64,000 nt of DNA from Carpediemonas membranifera BICM (Eukaryota > Protista > Fornicata): assembly GCA_019828565.1 (NCBI GenBank), contig JAHDYR010000012.1, positions 1,116,001 through 1,180,000 of the forward strand. The letters are read 5' to 3'. Every line of letters begins with the position of its first letter. Position 1 is the stretch's first letter. The position numbers and the translations under genes are program-made. Positions 9,044 through 23,800 of the stretch are shown here, piece by piece. Under the pieces are notes generated by a model. The model saw nothing but the letters and a program-made list of their open reading frames with translations. It was not told where the DNA came from and made no database searches.

Positions 9044-12011
9044 TCTCGAGTGGATGAAGGCGAGACCGTCGGCCGCCTCGATGACGAGGTCGAGTAGCTC
9101 GACTGGCGTGAGTCGGCCCTGCCTCCGGAGCCGCTCGACATACTCGGTCAGGCTGCCAAGGGCGCAGAACTCGGTCACGATGTAGATGGCCGGAAGTTTC
9201 ACTGTGGCGCCCAGGAACTTGAGCACGTTGGGGTGGGACAGCTCGACGAGGGTCTTAGCCTCCCGGGCAAACTCGTTCATGCTCGTGGCATCCGCCTGGA
9301 ACGCCTCATGCAGCTTCTTGATGCAGACCACCTGATCCTTGTACACAGCACGCGATACAGACCCGAACCCGCCTGCTGCGATGACCTCAGTCTCGGTGAT
9401 CTTCTCGGGAGCTATGAAGAAGTCGAATATGGCCGAGTAGAGCTTGTTACTGGAGTCGACACCGAGTTTGGTCAGCTCGGCCTTGGCGAACTTGCGCAGA
9501 CGGCTCCTGATGATGGCCTTTCTGACCGCCTGGGCGCTGCGGCCTGCGAGCACGAGGGTGAAGAACCCGGTCACGATAACGCCCGTGCACATGGCGCTCA
9601 GCAGCACGGCCAACGTCACCGTGATGACGCCCATGGCGAGGTAGAGGGAGGCGCCCCCGCTGCCGCCCCTGTCGTAGAAGCGGGCGTACCGCTTGAGCTG
9701 GTCAGCCGCGACGTCCCTGTAGACCACCATGTCGTCCGTGACCACAGCCGCGGTGCAGGTGAACTGGGCCGCCGCGCAGTCCGCGTTGAAGCTGGACTCG
9801 TGCTCCCACCGCCGGGCCCCCGTCCCCAGGGGCGTGCCGGCGAAGAAGTGTGTCGAGCAGCAGCTGCTGGTTCCCACGTCTGTCAGGGCCATGACGGCGC
9901 CGTCCGCGATGACGTCGATCGCTGTAGTCACCATCCCCAGGAAGCAGAGGCCCGAGTCATGTGCCACAGTGACATTCGTGCTCGGCGACCAGTCCTGCGC
10001 GATCGGGCTCCACACAAAGGACTCCGCGAGCACGCACTGCACGTCGCCCGACGCGACTGTGGTCGTAACACCGTCGGCCCGGGAGAGCACAAACTCGTTG
10101 GGCCCGACAAAAACTGCGTGGGAGGCGTCGAACTGCCCCGTGGTCTCTATTGTCGCTGCCATCGTCCAGCCCGCCTCCTCCGTCTTCTCGAGCATCGTGA
10201 ACTTGCCCGAGGTAGTGTAGGCGGCCGCGTGGGTCCCCCTGATCTGCAGGTACGTCCCGAAGTGCGAGCTGCTGAGGGTCAGCACTGTAGGAGTGAGGGC
10301 GTCAGGGTAACCGACGGGATACCCCGCGTGTAGGTCATAAATCCAGACTGTACCGATGTTACTGCCGACCATGAGTGTCCCGCTGTTGTTATCGTCGACC
10401 TCGATCGCCATCCCATACCCGAAGTTGGTCGCCAGATAGGGGTTAGGTGCACTGGTCGGCACCAGTGACCATGCGGCCGTGGAGTTGAAGTAGCCGCTGT
10501 CCGCCTCCTGCAGGAAGCCGTAGACGGCCCCAACCTCGCTCTCCATGACTGCGCTGGTGATGAGCATCGTCTCTGTCATGACGATGGCCTCCCCGAACGC
10601 CGACCCCAGGGCGACCGATCCGAAGAGCTTGTTGGCGAGGGTGTGGCTGTTCGTGGCGTCACCCGCGGCGGTGTTCGTCACGTTCATGACCTGGATCTGA
10701 CTGAAGATGCGCTCGGACCTGGACCCCGTGGTGCCTATGGCCAGCTTGTTACCACTCTGGGCAATCACCTGTCCGAAGTTGGCGATGCTGTTGTCGGGCG
10801 AGATGATGGAGTCCGCCATGTACCATCCAGAGCCGCTGACACGGCCGAGGACAGTCACGGTGCTCTGGGACCCGGCCGCTTGGTCGTCGGGCTCGATGGT
10901 GATGAGCATGCTATCACCGTCGAGTGCGATCTCGGTCGGCCTGGCCCTCGCGATGCCCCACGAGACGCTGTCGTACGCGACGTGGGACGTCTGATTGAAC
11001 ACGAAGACACACATCGTGTCGTCCGCACCAAAGGCCAACGTGTCGTTCTGCAGGGCAAGCGGGACGCCGATGGAAAGGCCCGAGAGCCACTCGAGGTGCG
11101 GGTCGAACTGCCAGGCGACCTCAGTCCATGCTGACCCGCCCTGGGGCCGCTGGTAGATGTGGATGGCGCCATCGGGCACGCTGCCGTCGACAATCTCGCT
11201 CACTGCCAGCTGGTCGGAGGCGTAGGCCGGGTTTGTGTCGAGACTGACGGCACCGAACGACAGGCCGTTCGTGGCGTCGCTAGTGAAGGTGGCCTCCGTC
11301 GTCCAGCTGATTCCGGTGGCGTCCGTCGCCTTGTACACGGTGATAGTCCAGGAGTCCGCAGTTATGAAGGAGACGGCCGCGACCGTGCGGTTTTGGAAGT
11401 CAAAGTCACGAACAGCATCGCCCAGTGTAGCTACTTTGTTCCAGGACACGCCAGCTCCGGTTAAGGTGGCGCGGAACACGAATGCTGCCATGGGTGTGCT
11501 GAGGCACGTGGCGACGATGATGTTGTCGGACACGATGGCGCGATGCTCCTTGCAGCCGGGAATATACAGCACGAAGCCGCTTATCGCGCTGAACGCCGTG
11601 GTCAGGCCGATGTTGAACACGAATACGGTGGATGCAGACAGCGTCACCCAGGTGCCGTCGGTAAACACGTTGGACGTGGAGGTCGTCGCGTCGTCGAAGT
11701 AGCGCTGGGATAGCATGGTCCAGCTGCCCCTGAATACTGTGTATAGCGTTGCATGTGGACGGAGGTTGACTCCTGTGTGAGAAAGAACGTTCAAACAAAC
11801 CTGTCGCTGCGTCCATGTAGCGCGCCGTGTTGATGATAGCGATCTTTACGTCCTCAGACGCCGCTGACCGTGAGGCCATCGTCAGACTCGTCCCGAATGC
11901 CCCGGCCACGGTCGATGGACTTACTGTGTCCGCTCCATCGGCCGTGAATGCAACGTTGGCCGTCACTAAGCACAAACTAAGCAGAACAATCGAAAGCTGT
12001 AGCAATATCAT
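8552..12011 (-). CDS. Single-pass receptor-like TKL kinase with FG-GAP beta-propeller ectodomain; join(11801..12011, 8552..11772)
   Basis: Signal peptide MILLQLSIVLLSLCLVTA in exon 1 is joined in frame by a 28-nt intron. FGxxxA propeller repeats, a long TM segment, and kinase motifs GGFGSV, VCIKKL, HRDIKPDN, DLG, APE, DVFSF. Confidence 0.88.
11773..11800 (-). other. Spliceosomal intron, 28 nt (GTTTGT...CTCACACAG)
   Basis: Removing it joins the signal-peptide ORF to the 1080-aa kinase ORF in frame (ACA G|GA GTC). Confidence 0.85.
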
Positions 12012-12261
12012 TACTTGCTGGGACAGAGGGCTTGTTTCTGTCGCTCGCTCAGATGCTCGTTCGGGACCGATCTGGGATAATGATGACCTGCAATAGGCCT
12101 CCAATAACCTCCAGCGTGCCTCATAGTTGGGCCACGCGCCACCTTTCTTGGGTGTGAATATCGGACATCTTGCCTATCTGTGATCGACCACCGCGCCACT
12201 GAGGACATCATGTCCTGAGACTTTATGGATAGCATAAACTCTGTCTAACGTATGAATAACA

Positions 12262-13512
12262 CTACATGCTGAACAACTTCTCCATCCCCCGCAGGTCCAG
12301 GTCCGCATCGGCCTCCTCCTCGACATCGACCTTCGTGCCCCGCCGCCGCAGCTTAGACCCCGACCACCGCGCCAGGACCCCCGACACGAATGCCCCCGCT
12401 CTGAGCATCTCTCTCTTCTCCCTCGAGGCATGCCCCTCGATGTCCCCCAACTTCTTCTCGATCACCGCGAATGACTCTAGGGTCGAGTCGAGCTCAAGGC
12501 TACGGCATCCGGGACACAGAATGGAGTCGAGCAGGTCCACGTAGAAGAAGATTCGATGGTACTGCGCCTTTGACACACAGTCGGCGAAGTCATACACATG
12601 GGCCGCCATCTGCTCGAACACCTCGTCCCCGATGAGCGTGACATTCGCAGGGCTGTGGTCGAGCTCGAACAACCGCCCGACCGGCTTGAAGTCGCCGGGA
12701 TACACGTCCGCGGCGTCCAACGGAGACATGCGCCGCCGCTTGATCTCCAGGAGTCGTCGCCTCCGCTTCTCCTCGGCCTGGTCAATCTCCTCGTCCCGGA
12801 TCTCCATGAGCTTGGTCTCGGCGTTGAACGACAGCAGCGGCACGGGGTCTGAGTGGTGGAATAGGGAGACGAAGTGGTGGCCCAGGGCTTGCTCGGTGAT
12901 GTGGTCCTGGACCATCGCGTCGAACAGCAGCGGGCAGCCGAGTGTGACAACGAGCAGCCCGTCCCTGACGGCCTGGGGCACGTCCGGGTTGAGCAGCACG
13001 TCCATCGCCTTGATCATCGCAATGGCGCCCCCTAGGCTGTGTCCCGCGAACACGACGCGCTTATCCCCGTGTATGTAGCCCATGAACTCGGGGCTGTAGC
13101 CATTGGCCCGCAGGAGGAAGCCGCTGTGGACATGCCCAAGGAGGTGCCCGTGGAGAATAAGCTGGGACGGCTTCACCGTGACGTCAACGATGGCGTCCAG
13201 CGAACCTGACGTCCCCATGAAGACGATGTAGACGGTGTCGGCGTCCTCGGCGAACAGGTAGTTGGTGTACCCGAGGCGGGTGATGGTGCAGTGGGTCAAA
13301 CGGACGAAGCCATGCGTCCTGGTGTTGAGCATGTTGATCAGAAATTGCGAGTGCGTTTGCCTGGCGGCCTCTGGGGTGTCGATTGAGACCCCATACAGCG
13401 TCGCGAGGCGCCTGCAGAGGTTAGGATCATCGTAGACTAACGCTGAGAGGTATATGGCTGTTATTAGTTGTGAAACGTTCTCTTTGTCGAAAACTCGGCC
13501 AAGATCGACCAT
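12262..13512 (-). CDS. Class 3 lipase (alpha/beta hydrolase)
   Basis: YIVFMGT, VHSGF, nucleophile elbow GHSLGG, TLGCP, DPVP. Confidence 0.9.
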   Translation of the reverse strand: MVDLGRVFDKENVSQLITAIYLSALVYDDPNLCRRLATLYGVSIDTPEAARQTHSQFLINMLNTRTHGFVRLTHCTITRLGYTNYLFAEDADTVYIVFMGTSGSLDAIVDVTVKPSQLILHGHLLGHVHSGFLLRANGYSPEFMGYIHGDKRVVFAGHSLGGAIAMIKAMDVLLNPDVPQAVRDGLLVVTLGCPLLFDAMVQDHITEQALGHHFVSLFHHSDPVPLLSFNAETKLMEIRDEEIDQAEEKRRRRLLEIKRRRMSPLDAADVYPGDFKPVGRLFELDHSPANVTLIGDEVFEQMAAHVYDFADCVSKAQYHRIFFYVDLLDSILCPGCRSLELDSTLESFAVIEKKLGDIEGHASREKREMLRAGAFVSGVLARWSGSKLRRRGTKVDVEEEADADLDLRGMEKLFSM

Positions 13513-13808
13513 TGTTTCCTTGTGATGATGTTGAACGTGATGGGGCTCGTTTAATAAACGGCATGCGGTCGGCCGTCGCTGACCCCTGAGCTGCCCCAGT
13601 TCACTGTATGACTGCTCAGCGGCATCAGACCAGTCTTATGAAGTATGGTGGGTTTCTGAGTGGTCGGTTGGTCGTGTCCGCATTTGGCCGACCCTATTGG
13701 CGGGCTCAGCCTGGGTCTAGCGGGTGGAGGACGCGTTTTTTGGCGCCATAGAGGCGTCTGTAGCCGGATAGGGCTGAACCATTGACGACTTCATTTCTGC
13801 GTTCAGCG

Positions 13809-15077
13809 ATGTCTCTTCCTGCCGGCTACAGCATCTCAAGGGACCCATTGACAGATCCATCATTCGCCAAACGCCGGAGTACGTACGAAAAGGCCCCGAT
13901 TGCTGAGCGGAGGATTATTACGAGCGAGGCATTGGAAAAGAAGCGCGTACCATTCCACGGGAACCTGACGATGGCCACAAACAGCAGTGCGCTGATGATG
14001 AAGCAAACATGTACGACGCAAAGGCCCCATAGGCAGTTTGAGCGCCTCCCACAGTATGCCCTTTCGATTGATGAACACATCACCAGCATCGCCATCCAGC
14101 CGGTGCATGCCGAGGACGAATCCGTTCCCCTCTTCGCGGTTGGGACCGAGGGCGGGCAGGTGCATGTCTTCGAGTTCGGTATGCGGCTGGTCGGGCGTTG
14201 TCTCGCCCACTCTCAGCAGACCGTGACGGCCTTGGCCTTCTCCACGATACACCCATACATATACAGCGGCAGCACAGACAACTCGGTCAAGCTGCTCACG
14301 TTCGACCGAGCTGCGGGCCAGCTGGTCGAGTCTGCGCGATTCAACGGCAGCACGGCCACCATCAAGGGCGTAGGCTCGCTCTACTTCCCCTTCAAGAAGG
14401 GGGAGAACGACATGGTCTACGGCGTGGCCCTAGACACTGAGCTCCGCGCCTGGGACGTCACCGGCGGCCAGCTGCACACCCGCCCCGCCCAGTCCGCCCG
14501 GGTTGCCACGGGGTGCCTCAGCATGGTAGCCATCCCCCGCGTGGGTGAGGGCAGTGTGGTCGTTGTAGGCACTAGGGGCGGCGACGTCCGCGCGTTCAGG
14601 GCAGACCGAGCGGGCCTGACCCAGATGGGCCAGCCGCTGCAGCTGCACGAGAGGAGCGTCGTTGCTATGGCCTTGTGGTACGACGACGGTGCCCCCCGCA
14701 TCGTCACGGCGTCTTCGGACCGAGTGGTGTGCTGGGACTTCGTGCCCACCGGCCCCGCCCCCATGAGGATGATAGGGGAGCTCGAGCTCGCAGACATCGG
14801 GCTAACGCACTCCGTGGTGCGGGCGGTGGCAGCCACAGACGATGGCCTCATCGCCATGGCGGCGGACGGGGTCCATCTGCTCGACGCGCACTCCCTGAGT
14901 CTCGGCCGGCCCTCCCTCGTCGGGTCGCTCCCCCTGCCCCAGGATGGGCACTTCCAGCCCGGGCCAGACCGCAGCGTCGTCACCAGCGTGGCGTTTGATG
15001 CGACGGCGACGAGGCTGCTGGTGGGATCGACGAGCACGGCGTACCCCTTCTTGGTCTACGGCCAGGTCGAGGATTGA
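13809..15077 (+). CDS. WD40-repeat protein
   Basis: Repeats such as H...VTALAFS...YSGSTDNSVKL, LRAWD and IVTASSDRVVCWD. Confidence 0.8.
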   Translation: MSLPAGYSISRDPLTDPSFAKRRSTYEKAPIAERRIITSEALEKKRVPFHGNLTMATNSSALMMKQTCTTQRPHRQFERLPQYALSIDEHITSIAIQPVHAEDESVPLFAVGTEGGQVHVFEFGMRLVGRCLAHSQQTVTALAFSTIHPYIYSGSTDNSVKLLTFDRAAGQLVESARFNGSTATIKGVGSLYFPFKKGENDMVYGVALDTELRAWDVTGGQLHTRPAQSARVATGCLSMVAIPRVGEGSVVVVGTRGGDVRAFRADRAGLTQMGQPLQLHERSVVAMALWYDDGAPRIVTASSDRVVCWDFVPTGPAPMRMIGELELADIGLTHSVVRAVAATDDGLIAMAADGVHLLDAHSLSLGRPSLVGSLPLPQDGHFQPGPDRSVVTSVAFDATATRLLVGSTSTAYPFLVYGQVED

Positions 15078-15106
15078 TCTGCAGTTAATGTCACCGAGCA
15101 GTTTTA

Positions 15107-16915
15107 TTAATTAAAATTCGTCCCCATGGTATACTCGTCGATGAGCTCAGCCTGCAGCATCGTCTCCTTGCCCTTGTCGATCGGCCCAACTCGCGTCACC
15201 GGCCTGTGGCTGCGGAGGTCCGAGGCCGGAGGGACCTTACCACCCCCGTCGGCCAGCACCAGGCAGTGGTACATCATGCGGAACCCCGCCGGGTGGAGCC
15301 ATTCGAGGCCATGTTCGGAGATTCCGGCCTTCTGCTCCTCCGCCAAGATCCTTATTCTGCGAAAAAGGGTGTGGATCTTGGGCGGGGTGATCTCTTGCTG
15401 GGTCTGACCCACGCTGGACTTGAAGGGCACGAAGATCGTTGACCCGTGCAGCTGGGCGTACGGCGACAGCTTCCGCCATCGGCGGAGGGCGTCTGCGCTG
15501 TATACGCTGAGGATTATTGTCGCCTTGGCCCCCTCCCCCGGGCGGGAGACAATGATAGTGGCCGCCTGACCGGGCTCTTTGGGGTCCTTGAAGTCGCGCC
15601 ACCTCATCTCGGACAGCTGCTCGGGGGTAAATCCGTTCGTGACCATGAGCATCGTCATCGCCCGGCACATCACCATGCGGCCCGCCGCGGGTGTCTTCTT
15701 ACCCATCTTGTCCGTCTGGCTAACGTGCTTGTTCATGAGGCGCATCAGCTTGTTGAAGTCCTCGTACGATAGACAGCCGACCTTGGAACCTGGACAGTCA
15801 TCGAACGTTGCAAACTGCCCCCACGTGTGCCAGCCATGCCACCAAGTATACCGCTGCAGCCTGAGCAGAACCCGCTTCACCGCACGCCTCGCCTGAGAGT
15901 TCTCACCGAACTTTTCCGCGACGAACTTGGTCACCAGCGTGCGGCCGACGTCCCCAGGGAACCCGAACACGAACCTGAGCACCGCCTCTACCTCCTCCGG
16001 CGCCGTCTCCGGGGCGGGCCCAAGGGTCCAGGTAGGATGGTGCAGTTTAGGGTCATCCATGGCCTGGCGGCGAGTGTAGATGCAGAACTTGCCCAGGTAC
16101 TGACCGTACCGGGTCTGCGTACTCGCCATGAGGTTGTCGAAGAGGTCCCACGGCTTGTACTGCTCCCGCGGCCAGATCCTGACCTTGCCGTCGTTCGTGA
16201 AGAGCGGCTTGGGCGGCAGCTCGACCGCCGGCTCCTGTTTCACGGCAGCCACCGTGGCTGGGCTGGGCGCGTCTGGGCGCCTCTCTTGGCCCGCAGACTC
16301 CGCCTCTTGCTCCTCGGATTCCTCCCCCGATTCTGGGGTGGACTCTTGCTCATCTTCATACTCATCACCCGCATCGCTTTCCTCTGAAGACGACGACGAC
16401 GATGACCCACTGTCGACAATCGGTTCCCTGGGGCCCTGAGGGGGGCCTCCCGTCCGCCGAGCCAGGGAGACGGCCGCGGGCATGTCCCAGTCCGACATCT
16501 CGGACACGATCGACTCCTCTGAATACGTGTCCGACTCATCACCGTCGAGCCCCTCGTCGGCGGGATGGGGGGGATCCGCCAGGACAGGGGTCGGGAGTCG
16601 AGCTTGGCCAAATTCTGCCTGCACACGTCGGGAAACCTCTGCCTTGAGCTCAGGCAGCCTGGACTCGAGGGTTTCGAACACGATCTCGGTGAACCTGGCG
16701 AATATTGAGCCCGTGTCAAAGGGCACTGGCTCGTCCGTGTCGGGAACGCGCTTTAGCTCCAATCCCGATGAAGGAAGAGTCTTCAAGACACGGGCATTGG
16801 TGCTATTAGCAGTTGTATTGTGCTTAGCTTGGCTGGATTTGGGGCCAGACCTTGCAGCGGTTGAATTGGTGCTGCCAGTGGAATCTTGCGTTGTGTTCTT
16901 CCTCTTGCGTGGCAT
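15107..16915 (-). CDS. Tyrosine recombinase (XerC/D-like)-fold protein, probably catalytically inactive, with basic NLS-like start and acidic disordered region
   Basis: Core-binding-like helices (STQTRYGQYLGKF; RAVKRVLLRLQRY), linker LSYEDFNKLM, box I RAMTMLMVTNGFTPEQLSEMRWRDF, SADALRRW...IFV, box II HPAGFRMMYHCLVLADG...DLRSH. Starts MPRKRK. Confidence 0.7.
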   Translation of the reverse strand: MPRKRKNTTQDSTGSTNSTAARSGPKSSQAKHNTTANSTNARVLKTLPSSGLELKRVPDTDEPVPFDTGSIFARFTEIVFETLESRLPELKAEVSRRVQAEFGQARLPTPVLADPPHPADEGLDGDESDTYSEESIVSEMSDWDMPAAVSLARRTGGPPQGPREPIVDSGSSSSSSSEESDAGDEYEDEQESTPESGEESEEQEAESAGQERRPDAPSPATVAAVKQEPAVELPPKPLFTNDGKVRIWPREQYKPWDLFDNLMASTQTRYGQYLGKFCIYTRRQAMDDPKLHHPTWTLGPAPETAPEEVEAVLRFVFGFPGDVGRTLVTKFVAEKFGENSQARRAVKRVLLRLQRYTWWHGWHTWGQFATFDDCPGSKVGCLSYEDFNKLMRLMNKHVSQTDKMGKKTPAAGRMVMCRAMTMLMVTNGFTPEQLSEMRWRDFKDPKEPGQAATIIVSRPGEGAKATIILSVYSADALRRWRKLSPYAQLHGSTIFVPFKSSVGQTQQEITPPKIHTLFRRIRILAEEQKAGISEHGLEWLHPAGFRMMYHCLVLADGGGKVPPASDLRSHRPVTRVGPIDKGKETMLQAELIDEYTMGTNFN

Positions 16916-17191
16916 TAACGGCTGTGTTTTTAGGACTCCTGCTTGACAGCCGTGCGAAGGGCGCACAGTAACTCTACCTTCCAAGTGGATTACTCGCAAC
17001 GGATTTACGCGCGAACATACTGGTCATGTACCGGTCCCGGGGGGCCAGGTTCGAGCGCTCAGCCGGCCCGGGACGAATAACTGGCCTTTAATGAGCGGCT
17101 GGTGAAAATGCCACACTTCACTGATCCCCTTGTTGCTCGCAGCGTCATAGTCGTATTTATACGGAAAAACAAAACAAAGCTGCAACACAAA

Positions 17192-19075
17192 TCAGTGGAA
17201 CTGGGCGATCGCCGTCTTCGCTGGGTCCAGCGCCCACATGCTGAGTTTCCCCGCCCCGTCGAAGGCGTACGTCCGCCGCACCATGGGTCTCGGCACCCGG
17301 ACAACCTCGTCGCGGCCCCGGCCCTCGCTGTCGACTCCGAGGTGGCCGTGGTAGTTCTCCCCGCACGCCAGCACGGCCCCGCTGTCTGTGGTGAACCAGG
17401 TCGAGAGCCCACCCGGCGACGCCCTGATCTCGGTGATGCCCTTGACGTCGAGCTTGACCCAAAAATCACAGTCGCCCGGCACGGGGACGCCCAGGGCGCC
17501 GTAGTCGTTGGACCCGAGGCCGTACCAGTCGCCTGTGTCGTGGCGCTGGACCCAGTACGCGTCGTCTCCGCATACGAACCGGGAGACGGGCCATGGGAAG
17601 GGGATCTGGTCGAGCTCGGCGTACTCGGAGTCCCGGAAGTACCAGAAGTCCGCACGGAGCCCGCATGCCCGGATGACGCCGTCGTGAAGGAAGAGGCCGG
17701 TCGTGCCGTCGAACGCGGCGTCCGTCACGGGGAAGGGCAGCTTAGCCAGCCGGGGGACGTCGTCGTCGTGCCCCAGCCCGAAGCGGGCCTCACAGTTCTC
17801 CCCGGCGACGTAGAGGTCCTGGCCGACGAGCACGGAGACCATGCTGTCCGAGAAGCGGAGATCACGGACGGAGGGGCCGCGGGGCATGGGGACGGGTGTG
17901 AAGTGCGGCACGATCTCCGTCTGCTGGCCCACCCCGAGCCGGCCGTGGGCGTTGTCACCGGCGGCGATGACACCCACCGGTGTCTCTATGAACGTCTGGG
18001 CCTGGCAGACGAGGATGTCGACGACGAGGCGGTCCTTGCGCCACGTAGCCAGCCCCTCCTCGAAGCGACTGACCTTGGGGGCCATGGGGAAGCGGGCACG
18101 GCGGGGGACCTTCAGGAAGCCGAACGACCCCCCCAGCCCGAGGGCCCCGAAGCGGTTGTCCCCCATAGTGTAGAGGCCCCGTGCCGTGACAGCCACCACA
18201 AACAGCGCGTCCCTGCTGTTGCCGCTGAACGACAGCACGGGCGGGACCCGGATGCGGTGGAACGTCGGGATGGTCTCGACCTCCCCGGGATCCGCTGGGT
18301 TCGAGCGGTTGGTGCCGCACACGAAGAGGCGACCGTGGTAGAGGATCGAGTCCAGCTTGGCGAACCGGTTCAGCTCGGTATGGCGCTCGCCGTCACGAGA
18401 GGCTACGCTCCTACAGAAGGCGAACTTCTTGCAGAGGAACCAGAGGACCCGGGCATCCTTGCTGAACTCACCTGCAGCGCCCTCGCCGAGACTGGGGTCT
18501 GCGCCCGCCTGCATGAGGGTTGCCCACACAGTGCCCTGCATCAGTGTGTACAGCGTGTCAGGCAGCCCGCCGTCTGCGAGCTCGATATTCATGGACCTGT
18601 CGCCGCCAGTCCGGAGGAGACGCCGCGCCGTGGACAACTCGTTGATCCGGACGGGCGGGTCCGCTGGTATGGACTCGAGGGTGGACTGGATGTGGCCGAG
18701 CCGCTGCTCGATGGTTGTTGGTGTGATGAAGGTCGGGACGGCAGTGCTGGTGCCGCCTATCCGTGCAACAACGGCCTTGTGCGCCCGCTTGATGAGGGTG
18801 GGTATGTCTCCTGGATGGTGCATCGTCACTTGGTCGACAACGGCGCCGAGGGCTTGAAGCTTTGATGCTATGAGGGTCAGCTGGTCATCGGACGTCGTCT
18901 GAACAGAGTTGATGCTCTCTAAAGCATAGAGATCTGTGATTGTTGCGATAAGATTGCGGCAAGCGCTCAGCATTCTCTCTTTAGCTGCAGTTGTTGCGTT
19001 TGTGAGCTCAGTTGATTGCAATGTGCCTAATACCGCTTCCAGCATCGCTATGGATGCTTGCGGGGAGTCTATCAT
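17192..19075 (-). CDS. RCC1/BLIP-II repeat protein, lineage-specific family (paralog of 44292-45881)
   Basis: Repeats GDNRFGALG, GDNAHGRLG, GENCEARFG, GSNDYGALG, GENYHGHLG. Confidence 0.85.
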   Translation of the reverse strand: MIDSPQASIAMLEAVLGTLQSTELTNATTAAKERMLSACRNLIATITDLYALESINSVQTTSDDQLTLIASKLQALGAVVDQVTMHHPGDIPTLIKRAHKAVVARIGGTSTAVPTFITPTTIEQRLGHIQSTLESIPADPPVRINELSTARRLLRTGGDRSMNIELADGGLPDTLYTLMQGTVWATLMQAGADPSLGEGAAGEFSKDARVLWFLCKKFAFCRSVASRDGERHTELNRFAKLDSILYHGRLFVCGTNRSNPADPGEVETIPTFHRIRVPPVLSFSGNSRDALFVVAVTARGLYTMGDNRFGALGLGGSFGFLKVPRRARFPMAPKVSRFEEGLATWRKDRLVVDILVCQAQTFIETPVGVIAAGDNAHGRLGVGQQTEIVPHFTPVPMPRGPSVRDLRFSDSMVSVLVGQDLYVAGENCEARFGLGHDDDVPRLAKLPFPVTDAAFDGTTGLFLHDGVIRACGLRADFWYFRDSEYAELDQIPFPWPVSRFVCGDDAYWVQRHDTGDWYGLGSNDYGALGVPVPGDCDFWVKLDVKGITEIRASPGGLSTWFTTDSGAVLACGENYHGHLGVDSEGRGRDEVVRVPRPMVRRTYAFDGAGKLSMWALDPAKTAIAQFH

Positions 19076-19399
19076 GCGTTTCTGTTGTACCGCTCCTTGT
19101 GGAACAAGTGGTAAAGCCCTTCACTTCTTCTTGGCACAAATCTCGAAAATTTGTGCTGGGGCGACCACGGGACAACGGAGCCAGGCTAGGCTCGGGGCAG
19201 ACGGCATACACCCATGCCAGATCCGGTTTAAAGTTTCTAGGTGAACACACGGCGAAGCGAATCGAATCGAATCGCCAGATCATAAAATTTGTATCAAGCG
19301 GCTGTCGGCCCTTTAACGTCTCAATAGCTCGGCAGCAGACCCCAGACCCGCAATCAGACCTGTATCGAGTCCTGGCTGCGGTTTATAGCATGGTGCAGC

Positions 19400-19780
19400 T
19401 CAGTCTTTCCAGTACCCAGCATGAGACTGCGACGGGGCGGGGCCACGGGAGCGGTTAGAAGCAGATGGTAGATCGGACTGTTCCGGAATCGCCTGTGCGC
19501 CGATCAATGGAATGGTCCCGCGCTGGTAGCAAGGCTTCTGAGGCAGATGAGCAAAGCCATTCTGTGCTGGGCGCTTTGGATCGCCACGAAGAGACGATAT
19601 TTCGGCCTGTAACGCATCAACCATGACCTTCAAGGAGTGATTGGCACGTTGGAGGGACGATACTTGCTCTGCAAGGCAAGAAATCTCGTGAAAGTGGCAA
19701 GCGATAAGTTCTTCCTGCAGCCGCTCGAACTTTGAAGTATTTGGGGTTGGTATCCAATGCTTTTCACCGTTTGCCGCCAT
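19400..19780 (-). CDS. Small hypothetical coiled-coil (leucine-zipper-like) protein
   Basis: 126-aa ATG-initiated ORF with heptads LAEQVSSLQRANHSLKVMVDALQAEISSL. It fills otherwise empty space. Confidence 0.45.
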   Translation of the reverse strand: MAANGEKHWIPTPNTSKFERLQEELIACHFHEISCLAEQVSSLQRANHSLKVMVDALQAEISSLRGDPKRPAQNGFAHLPQKPCYQRGTIPLIGAQAIPEQSDLPSASNRSRGPAPSQSHAGYWKD

Positions 19781-20120
19781 TTGCTTCAACCAATAGCGAA
19801 AGAGAGTTTTCCGGCGTCCGCGAGTCGGCCGCAGTTTTAGTCGCGGTCCACAAACGATGCGATAGCAGCAGTCTCCGCAAAACCAGATCTCTGCATGAGG
19901 CATCTCTGACCATGCCACATTTCGGCCAGCGTTGGCCACTCCATTCTGTGGCCGGGTGGCCATGAGAGGTATTGGGTCCCCATATGCTGACTCAGCATCA
20001 CAGCCCAACTGCAGAATACCCAGCCTGCGACGCCAACCCACCGAATCTCTGGATCCAATCAGATCGATCAGATTTCCAGCGAAGTCTGTTGCCCAAGTGC
20101 GCTTGCTTTGTAACAGCCAG

Positions 20121-20891
20121 ATGATTCACAACGCTATTAACTTCATCAGTGGTGCTTCTGCCGCCGGTACTATAGAGCTTACTGTCGCCAAAGCCTCCCA
20201 GTACTCCAAACTGCCCACTAAGGACAGGAAAATCGCCACCATGCTCGACCTCTACCGCAGAAGCATGCGCACGATGCCCATCAACATGATTGGCGGCGGC
20301 TCCTTCTTCACTGCGTGGGAAATGGGCCATCCTGCCCTTGGAGTCGTCACTGGAATGAACAGCTTCCTCGCCGATCTCATCGTCGGCGGCTTTTCCAACG
20401 TCGTTTCATCCACTCTCGTCCGCCCCGTCGGCGTACTCGTCACCTCGGGTCCCAAGGCTCTGCGAAAGGCCCCCGCGACCTCGATTTACGCTGGCTTCTT
20501 CGACCAGCTCAAGTGGTCGGTCCCCGCGTCGGGCGTCAACCAGGCCTCCTTCGCCTGCTCGATGAAGACTCTGTACGGCCTTGGCCTGGCTCAGGGTGGC
20601 GGATACCTGCCTTCCATGGCGTGCTCCGGTCTGATCAGCGCCACCGTCACTCACGCCACTGTCGGCACGGCACGCCAGTTCGCCCAGTACGTCGCCCACA
20701 CGCGCGCCGTGAAGGTTCCCGGCGACGCTGTCAAGCTATGGGAGCTCTGGCGGCAGTGGCTGTGCGATGCGGACGAGCGGGCGGAGTGGGTCTCCGACTG
20801 GAAGCGGGAGGCTGCAACTGTTGCCACGGGCGGGTTCACGTATGGCCTCGTCCGCAGCAGCCTGCGTGGGGCGCTTGGCATGCGTCGCTAA
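20121..20891 (+). CDS. Highly divergent mitochondrial carrier (SLC25)-like membrane protein
   Basis: About 256 aa in three ~80-aa units, each with a small-residue helix (FISGASAAG; LIVGGFSNVVSSTLVRP; ACSGLISATV). Units 1 and 2 also have LYRR/IYAG...P...F motifs. The PxDxxK signatures are eroded. Confidence 0.55.
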   Translation: MIHNAINFISGASAAGTIELTVAKASQYSKLPTKDRKIATMLDLYRRSMRTMPINMIGGGSFFTAWEMGHPALGVVTGMNSFLADLIVGGFSNVVSSTLVRPVGVLVTSGPKALRKAPATSIYAGFFDQLKWSVPASGVNQASFACSMKTLYGLGLAQGGGYLPSMACSGLISATVTHATVGTARQFAQYVAHTRAVKVPGDAVKLWELWRQWLCDADERAEWVSDWKREAATVATGGFTYGLVRSSLRGALGMRR

Positions 20892-23800
20892 GCAGCTTGC
20901 GCCTTCGCCGACAACAGAAAGTAAATGCGTAATTTATCAGTGTTACTCCGCGATGCTTTCCGCGCAGAGCACTGCGGTCCGCAGCAGGTCGGACAGCTGG
21001 CTCACGACAGCGGGCACGGTCGGGGCGACGAGGGCGGGCGCTGGGGCCCTGGTGCGGTCGCCCGCCGCGGCCTTGAAGATGTTGACGTTGACCGACTGGG
21101 GCTCGGTTCCGGCGGGCATCGCCATCTGGGACAACGCGATGCAGTGGTCGTTCTGGCCCGACACAAAGAAGCGGCGGTGGCGTAGCGTGGAGTGGCCGTC
21201 GAACGGCACGACCTCCTGCTCGCCGACAGCCGCGCGGGCGAGCAGCTCGTTGGCGGACTCGTCGGGCTCGGCCATCGTGGCAGCGTCGATGTCGGGCAGA
21301 GGCAGCGCGATCACGGGCGTCGCCTCCTCGGTCTGGGAGGTGGAGCGCGCGGTCGTCTGGAAGACGCACCCGAGCGGGATCGTGCTCGCTGCAGCAACGA
21401 TACCGTCGAGCGCAGAGTCGCCACCCTCGGTCGGGCGGATGACGCGGGGGCGCGCCCTGATGACGAAGGAGATGTCGACGCCGGGGTGGGGCGTGGCGAC
21501 GAGAATCTGGGCGGACGCGCCAGTGAGGCTGAGCTCGACGGGGCAGTCGGTCGGCGCCAGGCTCGACAGGTCGGCAGGTGAGAGCTCGGGCCCGGGGACG
21601 CCCGTGACGTGGCGCGTCATCGTGACCTGGCGCCACACGGCGCGGTCGGCGACAGCGAGGGGCTTGCGGTTGAGGACGAGCGTGTCGGGCAGCTCCGCGA
21701 CGTCGCCCTCGGGGAGGTTAGCGGTCAGCAGCTTGGAGCGCGCGAGAGTGGCGTCCGCCGCGACGAGGCTGACATGGAACGAGCCCTGGTGGCCCTCAGT
21801 GACGTCGCCGGGGAGGGGCATGGCCGCGACGAGGCGGTCGGCGGCATCGGCCGAGACGCCAGCCCAGAAGCGGGCGTCGTAGCGGCGGTCGTGGATGTTG
21901 TCCGCGATGAGGTTGACCTTCGTCTGCTTGGTCGTCGGCTGGGCCATGATGTTGATGACGTTGCGGCCGACGTAAGCCGAGATCTCGAGGTCGGGCAGAC
22001 TTCCGAGCCCGTCGACGGCCGGGTTGGAGCTGTCCGCGGCGTGGCCGAGCATGCCGGACAGGGCACGCGCGACAGCGCCCTCCCAGTAGGCGCGGGCACC
22101 AGCGAGCGCGGCGTCGAACCAGCAGGCGCCGAGCGAGATGGTCTTCTCGCCGGGGGCGAGGACTCGGGCGGTGCTGGTGCGGTCAGCGAAGAAGAACTCC
22201 TCGACGGGGTCGGAGAAGTCCTCATCGCCAGACATCTCCGAGTCGGAGAAGCCGAAGAGCGCGTCACCGATCGGCTTGTCCGCGACGTCAAGGGTGAACT
22301 GCACAAGCTGCGGGCGCGTGCTGCGGGGCGACTGGGCGCCGGTGGGCGTGTGGGCGACAGAGTGGCCGTACGGCGTGACGCCGTAGACGTTGTCCATCGA
22401 GGCTGTCGGCGTGACAGGCGTGCCGTCAGTCTCCTGCTTGGCGAGGCTCTCGAGGCGCGACGACAGGCCTGCGAAGAGCGTGGCCGGCGACTGGGGAGGG
22501 GTCTGGCGCGGCGTCTCGATGCCCAGGGCGGGGGTCTCGGCCGAGGGGACGAGCACGTTGTCGTCGACGTGGGGCACGAGCGTGTACGACGCGGCACGCG
22601 GGCGTGCGGCCCGTGGAGCGGCGCGGGGGCAGCACCGAGAGGAACATGGCGCAGCGGTGAGACTGGAGCAGCGCCATGCGCGAGATGAAGAGCTTGCGCG
22701 TCAGCACGACCGTGTCGACGGGACCCGCGATGACGGCGTACTTGTCGCCGCTGTCGTTCGACGGTAGGAAGAGAGCGACGTCTCCTCCCGCGAGCTTGAC
22801 GATGCGCTTGAGGTTCTCGCCGTTGCGGCCGATGATGCGGCCGATGAGGCTCTGGACGATGGGCAGGCGGGCGTACGAGAAGTCGCACAGCAGTTCAGCG
22901 ACCTCTTGCTCGGCTTCCTCGATGTTTCCAGGCTGGCCGACGAGGACGAGAGCGCCCTGGGCCTCGGAGGACTGCGACGTGACCTCGACGCGCAGCGTCA
23001 CGCCCGTCTGCTCGCGGATGCGGCGTAGCGTGGCGGCGCGAGGTCCGACGAGATAACGGTCGGCGTAGAGCGGCAGCGTGACCGTCTTTTTGCCGCGCGT
23101 GCCGTCGATCTTGACGTTGCTCTGCAGTCTCTCAACGATGAGGCCGAGGGCCTCGCGGACACCATGGGCCGGGCCCTTGACGATCGCCCACCCGTTGTCG
23201 AAGCGGATCGTCGTGCCGGTCTTGTCACGGATGCCCTGGACGGTCGACCCGTTCTGGCCGATGAGCACGCGCTCTGAGCCGTTCGGGATGTGGACGACGC
23301 GGACGAGGGGCGCTGCATCCGGCGGGTCGGGCCCGTGGTTCTTGGTGCGCGGTGTGGCGCTTCACGTTGACGGTCGTCGGCCACGGCTGGCTCTCGTCCG
23401 TGGCGGCCGTGATGGTGGCGTGCAGGCTGTCCTTGACGAGGTAGAGGCGCTCCGTGGGGCAGTGCAGGCGCAGCACGTGGCGGTAGACGGACACGGTCGC
23501 GGGCTCAGTGCCGTCGTCGGTGCGGCAGGTCTTGGCAATTCCCTCAATACCCTCGAGCGAACGAAGCCACTCCTCGGCCTTCTTCGTCAGCAGGAACTCG
23601 ACAGTGACGTGCGAGTCCGTCTGGTCGGCCATGCGGCGGTGTGTCTCCATGGAGGCCATGGATGCGCACCGGGACATTGACCCAGTGGGGGCTTGCTCGG
23701 TTTGCTTCCACTCAGCGAGCTTCTCCTCGATGAGCTTCTTAGCGAGCTGCGTCTGCTCTTCTGTACCCCGGATGATCGTGATGCCGCCCTCTTGGAACGA

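Follow-up and report, generated by a model that had tools for sequence, protein, structure and literature searches.

A putatively domesticated, catalytically degenerate tyrosine recombinase-like gene in Carpediemonas membranifera

In this study, we analyzed a single gene within a stretch of 64,000 nucleotides of the genome of Carpediemonas membranifera BICM (GenBank assembly GCA_019828565.1, contig JAHDYR010000012.1, positions 1,116,001 to 1,180,000 of the forward strand). This whole stretch is called the window in the following, and all positions are counted from its first letter. The gene is located at 15107-16915 on the minus strand. According to the open reading frame (ORF) listing and the translation, it starts with an ATG at 16913-16915, which opens the sequence MPRKRK, ends with a stop codon at 15107-15109 and encodes a product of 602 amino acids (aa). 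The original prediction, made by a model from the letters of the window, had described this ORF as an apparently inactive tyrosine recombinase (YR) of the XerC/D type that was domesticated as a nuclear protein. The ORF proved to be intact at the predicted coordinates. At the base composition of the window, chance would keep 602 codons open with a probability of approximately 9e-9. In the C-terminal 342 aa of the product, the architecture of YRs was found, consisting of a core-binding and a catalytic domain. Its features are collected in Table 1.

For the recognition of the fold, several profile methods were used. With aa 381-602 alone, Phage_integrase (PF00589) was the sole match among 24,736 Pfam models (E 0.1, 12.8 bits), and aa 416-536 were mapped onto profile positions 23-131. 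Because this family had been named beforehand, the per-model p of approximately 4e-6 (E 0.1 divided by 24,736 models) is usable for PF00589. Also, a custom hidden Markov model (HMM) and alignment were made from Escherichia coli XerD and 50 XerD-like proteins from IMG/VR contigs (51 sequences). This HMM aligned aa 415-535 in the PF00589 register (p 0.0057), and 4 of 3000 shuffled sequences scored as well. By hhalign against the 51 XerD-like sequences (P 4.6e-4), 259 colinear columns spanning both domains were obtained; in the core-binding stretch, aa 261-282 (NLMASTQTRYGQYLGKFCIYTR) were placed on XerD 20-41 (NLAENTLNAYRRDLSMMVEWLH), followed by later helices in colinear order. The hhalign score of 33.5 was reached by none of 120 shuffles (mean 15.7, standard deviation 2.8, maximum 28.7; z 6.4), while the reversed sequence gave a score of 17.8, which is at background level. 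The predicted order of secondary structures in the catalytic domain (helix, helix, three-strand sheet, helices) fits that of YRs. The integrase layout that the original prediction had read in the C-terminal ~320 aa is thus above chance by the HMM and hhalign shuffles and below every curated family threshold.

Another line of evidence was obtained with the ESM Atlas. The feature search with its protein language model gave a score of 0.97 and returned integrase families only, the ten best family-bearing matches all being PF00589. The Atlas's own model of the protein matched six YR cluster types with template modelling (TM) scores of 0.54-0.63 over residues 261-575/599; YR clusters were the only ones matched. 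For aa 1-260, the Atlas search yielded no usable feature match (TM <=0.20), which serves as an internal negative control. For structure prediction, AlphaFold2 (AF2) was guided by the XerD-like alignment and gave a model with a mean predicted local distance difference test (pLDDT) value of 73.6, which matched Cre, XerA, XerH, XerD, and lambda Int. In this model, the core-binding domain has four helices (pLDDT ~70-83), and aa 381-550 have pLDDT values of mostly 85-96 with two ten-residue blocks of 76-77. The value falls to 64 at aa 551-560 and to <50 at aa 558-602, though the alignment columns there (LGHxxxxTTQIYTHV) are the most conserved ones. As modelled, the tail of the protein does not fit the Tyr-bearing helices.

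A number of results speak against a YR relationship, and they are the basis of an alternative in which the protein is an orphan whose integrase resemblance arose from chance and language-model bias. The PF00589 match of 12.8 bits is below the gathering threshold of 27.1 bits, and searches of Pfam, PHROGs, and NCBIfam with the full protein and with the C-terminal 342 aa gave no integrase match, so that every curated library stays below threshold. PDB sequence searches gave chance matches only (e.g. PD-1, a phage adaptor), and the hhalign probability is only 33%. AF2 with the single sequence failed (pLDDT 36, no usable model), which makes its Foldseek search meaningless. The guided AF2 model is threading and not an independent test, because the recombinase alignment imposes the fold. 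Furthermore, the language-model features and the model of the Atlas share one language model and count as one line of evidence. On the other side, the profile HMM and HH methods lead to the family that is also indicated by the language model, in an identical register, and the alignment is colinear across two domains. Both shuffle controls, the reversed sequence and the signal-free N-terminal half also argue against a chance resemblance, and we regard a protein that is not related to YRs as quite improbable. The C-terminal part very probably has a YR-derived fold. At the fold level, the protein is a derivative of the tyrosine recombinase/phage integrase superfamily, but an annotation as tyrosine recombinase would not be appropriate, because the curated thresholds and the catalytic signature failed. 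Topoisomerase IB shares the catalytic fold of YRs; it was considered as a separate candidate and rejected, since no topoisomerase model of Pfam matches and the N-terminal domain of the YR-like part is XerD-like.

The active site was mapped with HMMER, hhalign, and MAFFT, which agree with each other, and the codons were checked. Of seven active-site residues, R546 and H570 alone are kept, whereas the other five, including the Tyr, have been exchanged (Table 1). The original prediction had stated that the first catalytic Arg is a Thr, that the HxxR motif reads AGFR and that a Tyr about nine residues after the RSH motif is missing. All three statements were borne out, by T430 in GFTPEQL, by A543-G-F-R546 (with LH541-P upstream), and by I579 at +9 from H570 with Y595 as the sole later Tyr at +25. 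The replacement of the beta-hairpin Lys (GKG to GE461G) is a loss additional to these. In tyrosine recombinases, the loss of Arg-I, Lys or Tyr each abolishes recombination, and to our knowledge Arg-I and Lys are required in every characterised member. With five of the seven residues lost including the Tyr, canonical DNA cutting or rejoining is therefore not expected. Judged from the knowledge on the R-E/D-K-H-R-H/W-Y active site, the protein is almost certainly not a recombinase.

Table 1. Features of the YR-like gene and its product in the window
Feature	Residues	Position	Strand	Basis or remark
Whole coding sequence	1-602	15107..16915	-	602 codons + stop, intronless; ORF listing, translation, contig with 0 mismatches
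Transcript-like contig (contig 3 of run X1)		15101..16926	-	1826 nt; 0 mismatches, no joints
N-terminal acidic extension, probably disordered, no recognisable domain	1-260	16136..16915	-	260 aa; isoelectric point (pI) 4.5; 50 D+E vs 28 K+R
MPRKRK, basic motif (RKRK) resembling a nuclear localisation signal	1-6	16898..16915	-	Read from sequence; putative function
Ser/Glu/Asp-rich tract	171-207	16295..16405	-	Read from sequence
Core-binding-like helical domain	261-380	15776..16135	-	hhalign; Atlas structure match from residue 261; alignment-guided AF2
Catalytic-domain-like region	381-602	15110..15775	-	PF00589 match; custom HMM; alignment-guided AF2
Arg-I replaced	T430	15626..15628	-	GFTPEQL vs GLRVSEL; HMMER, hhalign, MAFFT
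Acidic residue three positions after Arg-I replaced	Q433		-	E432 adjacent
Catalytic Lys (beta2-beta3) replaced	E461	15533..15535	-	GEGAK vs GKGxK; K464 three residues on
His-II replaced	A543	15287..15289	-	H541 two residues upstream
Arg-II kept	R546	15278..15280	-	MAFFT invariant column including query; aligned by hhalign
His-III kept	H570	15206..15208	-	MAFFT invariant column including query; aligned by hhalign
Tyr nucleophile replaced	I579	15179..15181	-	MAFFT alignment column Y319; hhalign puts a 6-residue deletion here
Sole Tyr after H570	Y595	15131..15133	-	25 residues downstream of H570; pLDDT <50 region

According to another alternative, the protein is still active as a non-canonical recombinase, in which R546 and H570 would cooperate with Y595, the latter perhaps being donated in trans as in Flp. 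Y595 is part of a Tyr-Thr pair (EYT vs IYT) on a predicted helix, and the two kept residues are R-II and H-III, which would suit such an enzyme. It would have to work with a T in place of Arg-I, an E in place of the catalytic Lys, and an A in place of His-II; also, the gene is present in single copy and has no surrounding repeats or target sites. In addition, the phage protein MrpR retains K and Y and yet shows no recombination (PMC10516654). A still-active enzyme is therefore highly improbable.

For the detection of further copies, the whole genome (24,237,836 bases in 69 contigs) was searched on the protein level at E up to 10 and on the DNA level, and the gene was found as a single copy. 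Its next neighbour in the 5′ direction is an RCC1-like gene at 17192-19075 on the minus strand, whose stop is 276 nt away from the start of the YR-like gene; a class-3 lipase gene is located further along, past the RCC1-like gene. On the other side, a WD40-repeat gene at 13809-15077 on the plus strand is oriented convergently, and 29 nt separate the two stops. Because the flanking WD40 and RCC1-like genes are packed so closely, there is no room for element termini. A repeat search in 11000-21000 gave only short imperfect pairs at chance level and no terminal repeats around the YR-like gene, in agreement with the absence of element ends noticed in the original prediction. Features of DIRS, Ngaro or Crypton elements were accordingly not found: only one copy exists, the surrounding 10 kb are devoid of meaningful repeats, and the active site is degenerate. 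Many near-identical copies with element termini, which would have indicated a live transposon, are not present either.

For the analysis of transcription, we used Logan contigs of a public run from 2017 (run X1; ~10 Mb in 36,010 contigs), which contains 91% of the sampled words from 14600-17400. One transcript-like contig covers the whole YR-like gene and reaches beyond the ORF by only 11 nt upstream of the ATG and 6 nt downstream of the stop (Table 1). Across 13600-19200, the contigs of this run track the gene borders: the contig 13819-15119 corresponds to the WD40 gene and contigs from 17145 onwards to the RCC1-like gene, while the intergenic region 16927-17144 is nearly uncovered. The word depth is 27.8 on the contig of the YR-like gene; most contigs on the genes next to it have depths of 39 and 58-68, i.e. 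in the same order, although contig word depth is a poor measure of abundance according to a warning of the tool. Contig breaks at intergenic spacers are expected of a transcriptome and not of genomic DNA, and the gene was therefore taken as a transcribed unit of its own, which starts at the ATG of MPRKRK and has very short untranslated ends. The RNA label of the run is a guess of the tool, which counts against this reading. The contigs of the WD40 gene and the YR-like gene overlap by 19 nt (15101-15119); because of this overlap of two convergent genes, the 3′ ends of their mRNAs would be mutually antisense.

Expression is a meaningful discriminator in C. membranifera, because Rep and helitron genes acquired by this organism were dismissed in the genome paper for their lack of RNA-seq coverage (PMC8516963). 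As expected for a host gene, the YR-like gene has an intact frame and a host-like composition and, given the RNA label that the tool guessed for the run, is expressed.

For comparison, the YRs of resident mobile elements were examined. At least 98 above-threshold PF00589 matches were obtained from 234 candidates in the genome, in multi-copy frames of 200-1279 aa that are distributed over many contigs. The 15 extracted recombinase domains are parts of DIRS-like elements, and their SR..RTKT..HSFRRG..GxW..Y signature is intact. This points to DIRS-like elements that are active or recent and whose codon use is clearly not host-like: their YR-bearing frames have a GC content at third codon positions (GC3) of 0.53-0.60 and a codon adaptation index (CAI) of 0.40-0.45. 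Several of the DIRS-like PF00589 frames are arranged in tandem at C6:504000-522000. For the YR-like gene, GC3 is 0.77 vs 0.72-0.91 for 23 other long ORFs in the window, and CAI is 0.587 with a leave-one-out range of 0.563-0.801 (median 0.667) for the host. Separated by parts, the C-terminal domain has a CAI of 0.629 and the N-terminal half a CAI of 0.538, which is below the host range. The host-like codon use of the original prediction is thus supported by GC3 and CAI, both being within the host range, the CAI near its lower limit.

Homologs of the protein were searched for in large collections. An exhaustive phmmer search over 1.84 billion representative proteins and a word-indexed search in 5.8 billion clusters returned the YR-like protein itself only, and a scan of JGI metagenomes gave no relative. 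The search for paralogs and orthologs suggested before thus yielded none in the genome or in the protein and metagenome collections. These results bear on a further explanation, according to which the gene is a transcribed relic: an ancient integrase gene, brought in by a virus, by lateral transfer or by a mobile element that has since been lost, would be inactive and drift without function. No ortholog or paralog is present in the collections searched, which speaks for such a relic, and lineage-specific orphans are often dispensable. The CAI, which is among the lowest of the host range and for the N-terminal half even below it, points in the same direction, as do the lost catalytic residues and the C-terminal 45 residues, which misfit the fold even with the guiding alignment. 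Also, the tight gene packing makes read-through transcription conceivable. However, the frame of 602 codons stayed intact despite a divergence past the reach of phmmer, and the persistence of a recognisable fold pattern after the loss of the catalytic residues is a signature of selection on structure and not on chemistry. The transcript-like contig ends separately from those of both neighbours and is of similar depth, the codon use has converged on that of the host unlike that of the resident elements, and acquired Rep and helitron genes in C. membranifera were reported to be unexpressed (PMC8516963). We consider a functionless relic unlikely, but with a chance that is still appreciable.

Instead, it appears reasonably probable that the gene is a domesticated host gene derived from an inactive YR, and that its product is now a nuclear, non-catalytic DNA-binding protein such as a transcription or chromatin factor. 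Domestication of an inactive YR, as proposed in the original prediction, fits the fold, the lost catalytic residues, the single copy, the codon use, the missing element ends, and the transcription. In such a scenario, the C-terminal 342 aa would have descended from a YR of XerC/D or phage-integrase architecture and would have diverged beyond ordinary sequence recognition. In the YR fold, the DNA is held between the two domains, one on either side, and at paired sites the monomers associate with each other (PMC3537659). The remaining basic, C-shaped clamp of two domains (C-terminal 342 aa: pI 9.6, 47 K+R vs 33 D+E) would supply DNA recognition and perhaps self-association. The N-terminal arm, for which the MPRKRK motif and the acidic, Ser-rich tract had been predicted, contains both of these features, the acidic part comprising 260 aa and the tract aa 171-207. 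With aa 1-260 alone, no Pfam match was obtained; the whole protein gave a weak match to DUF5308 (aa 175-349, E 0.026), which is below the cut-off. The acidic, Ser-rich arm may recruit partners as an activation or chaperone-like module, and the RKRK motif at the N-terminus could mediate nuclear location, as judged from the motif. DNA binding and nuclear location of the protein as well as maintenance of the gene by selection are inferred.

Inactive YR folds have been recruited repeatedly as DNA binders, for example in animal DUF3504 proteins, yeast Gcr1 and Ndc10, the plant ALOG domain, and phage MrpR. Nearest to the YR-like protein in structure are the XerC/D, Cre, and lambda Int type recombinases, in which a SAM-like core-binding domain precedes PF00589; they have the same domain order and the same sequence of helices and strands as the YR-like protein. 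Several features of XerC/D-type proteins recur in register in the YR-like protein: the motifs S..T...Y..L..F and LSxE(D)F..L, the G that precedes Arg-I, the beta-hairpin, and the residues R-II and H-III. In contrast to this type, the YR-like protein has an identity of only 11-18% and a score below the Pfam threshold, 5/7 active-site residues replaced and a degenerate Tyr helix, and it bears an insertion of ~30 residues in the core-binding domain and the acidic extension of 260 aa; furthermore, it is encoded by a eukaryotic single-copy gene.

Parallels are known from host genes of other eukaryotes. The Crypton-derived DUF3504 genes (KCTD1, KIAA1958, ZMYM2-4, QRICH1, WOC) are animal host genes in which the YR domain is part of longer regulatory proteins; their DUF3504 domains lost the catalytic Tyr and other catalytic residues, and a DNA-binding role was proposed (PMC3212892). 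DUF3504 lost R-II, whereas the YR-like protein keeps R-II and lost R-I, and DUF3504 genes have been conserved for hundreds of millions of years, whereas the YR-like gene has no known ortholog. The DUF3504 profile PF12012 gave no match to the YR-like protein in Pfam at E up to 10. In budding yeast, the CryptonF-derived proteins Ndc10/Cbf2 and Gcr1/Msn1/Hot1 are inactive YR-related DNA-binding modules, Ndc10 being a centromere protein and Gcr1, Msn1, and Hot1 transcription factors (PMC3212892; PMC3537659). A further source for this is the work of Perriches and Singleton 2012, which is cited in PMC6077249. Searches with the YR-like protein gave no Pfam match to the Ndc10 and GCR1_C profiles at E up to 10 and no Ndc10 chain among the PDB sequences. 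Compared with Ndc10/Gcr1, there is no detectable sequence relation and the added domains are different.

A comparable loss of activity is known from phages. MrpR/YopR of the Bacillus phage SPbeta has the full YR fold with core-binding and catalytic domains, has lost most of the catalytic residues and was identified by experiments as a DNA-binding repressor that does not act as a recombinase (PMC10516654). The residues left in MrpR include K and Y, whereas the YR-like protein keeps R-II and H-III. MrpR and SroF are phage proteins without sequence similarity to the YR-like protein, which bears a eukaryote-style acidic extension. SroF, a repressor of phage phi3T (PDB 9rgl_A), was found at rank 49 among the fold matches of the guided AF2 model; together with MrpR, it illustrates that dead recombinases recur as repressors in SPbeta-like phages.

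The resident DIRS-like YRs share the superfamily fold and are an obvious resident source of a YR. They are multi-copy, have an intact signature and carry a Trp at position III, where the YR-like protein has a His. Descent from the resident DIRS recombinases was analyzed by BLASTP and phmmer against their ORFs and by hhalign against a profile of 11 sequences. No similarity was found by any of the three methods; with 16.7, the hhalign score is at the level of the shuffles against the XerD-like profile, and a direct origin from DIRS was set aside as unsupported. In profile space, the YR-like protein is nearer to XerC/D- or phage-type proteins than to DIRS, with the two profiles differing in depth. 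The source could be an extinct old element family, a Crypton-like element, a virus or a transfer from a prokaryote. An independent origin, which had also been claimed, fits the finding that the protein is not connected by sequence with DUF3504, with Ndc10/GCR1 or with the DIRS recombinases of the genome, as far as sequence comparisons can indicate.

As the pattern of lost residues is different and a sequence link is missing, the putatively domesticated gene would add an independent example of a known evolutionary route. A narrow literature search pairing Carpediemonas membranifera with tyrosine recombinase gave just a preprint on DIRS methyltransferases, and this would be the first such domestication found for Metamonada. 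Based on the present evidence, it is an annotation-level result on one orphan gene, which provides a concrete, expressed, and taggable candidate for a DNA-binding protein. Carpediemonas was reported to be without the Ndc80 complex, the origin recognition complex (ORC), and Cdc6, as the sole free-living eukaryote lineage so reported, and the origin-recognition and kinetochore-microtubule machinery of C. membranifera is unknown (PMC8516963). Because of this, lineage-specific chromatin proteins of C. membranifera are worth localising. A more specific proposal is that the YR-like protein is a chromosomal DNA-recognition factor specific to Carpediemonas, which would either have the role of Ndc10 at the point centromeres of budding yeast or mark sites of replication start. 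If true, the protein would be a piece of the machinery replacing ORC, Cdc6, and Ndc80. This proposal can draw on the YR fold, on the expression of the gene and on an N-terminus that looks nuclear, none of which is specific to ORC, Cdc6 or Ndc80, and we judge it very unlikely.

Some further observations concern the neighbourhood of the YR-like gene. A 309-aa ORF at 19962-20888 gave no Pfam match at E up to 0.01. Inside the RCC1-like gene, four copies of a 27-nt motif (17337-17960) were found at spacings of 153, 288, and 156 nt, which are the DNA trace of its RCC1 repeats of ~51 residues. On the same gene, a 239-nt contig of run X1 is located at 17595-17833; it differs by 7 mismatches and has a depth of 209 vs 58-68 for most others, and it is probably derived from a more highly expressed paralog in the RCC1-like family.

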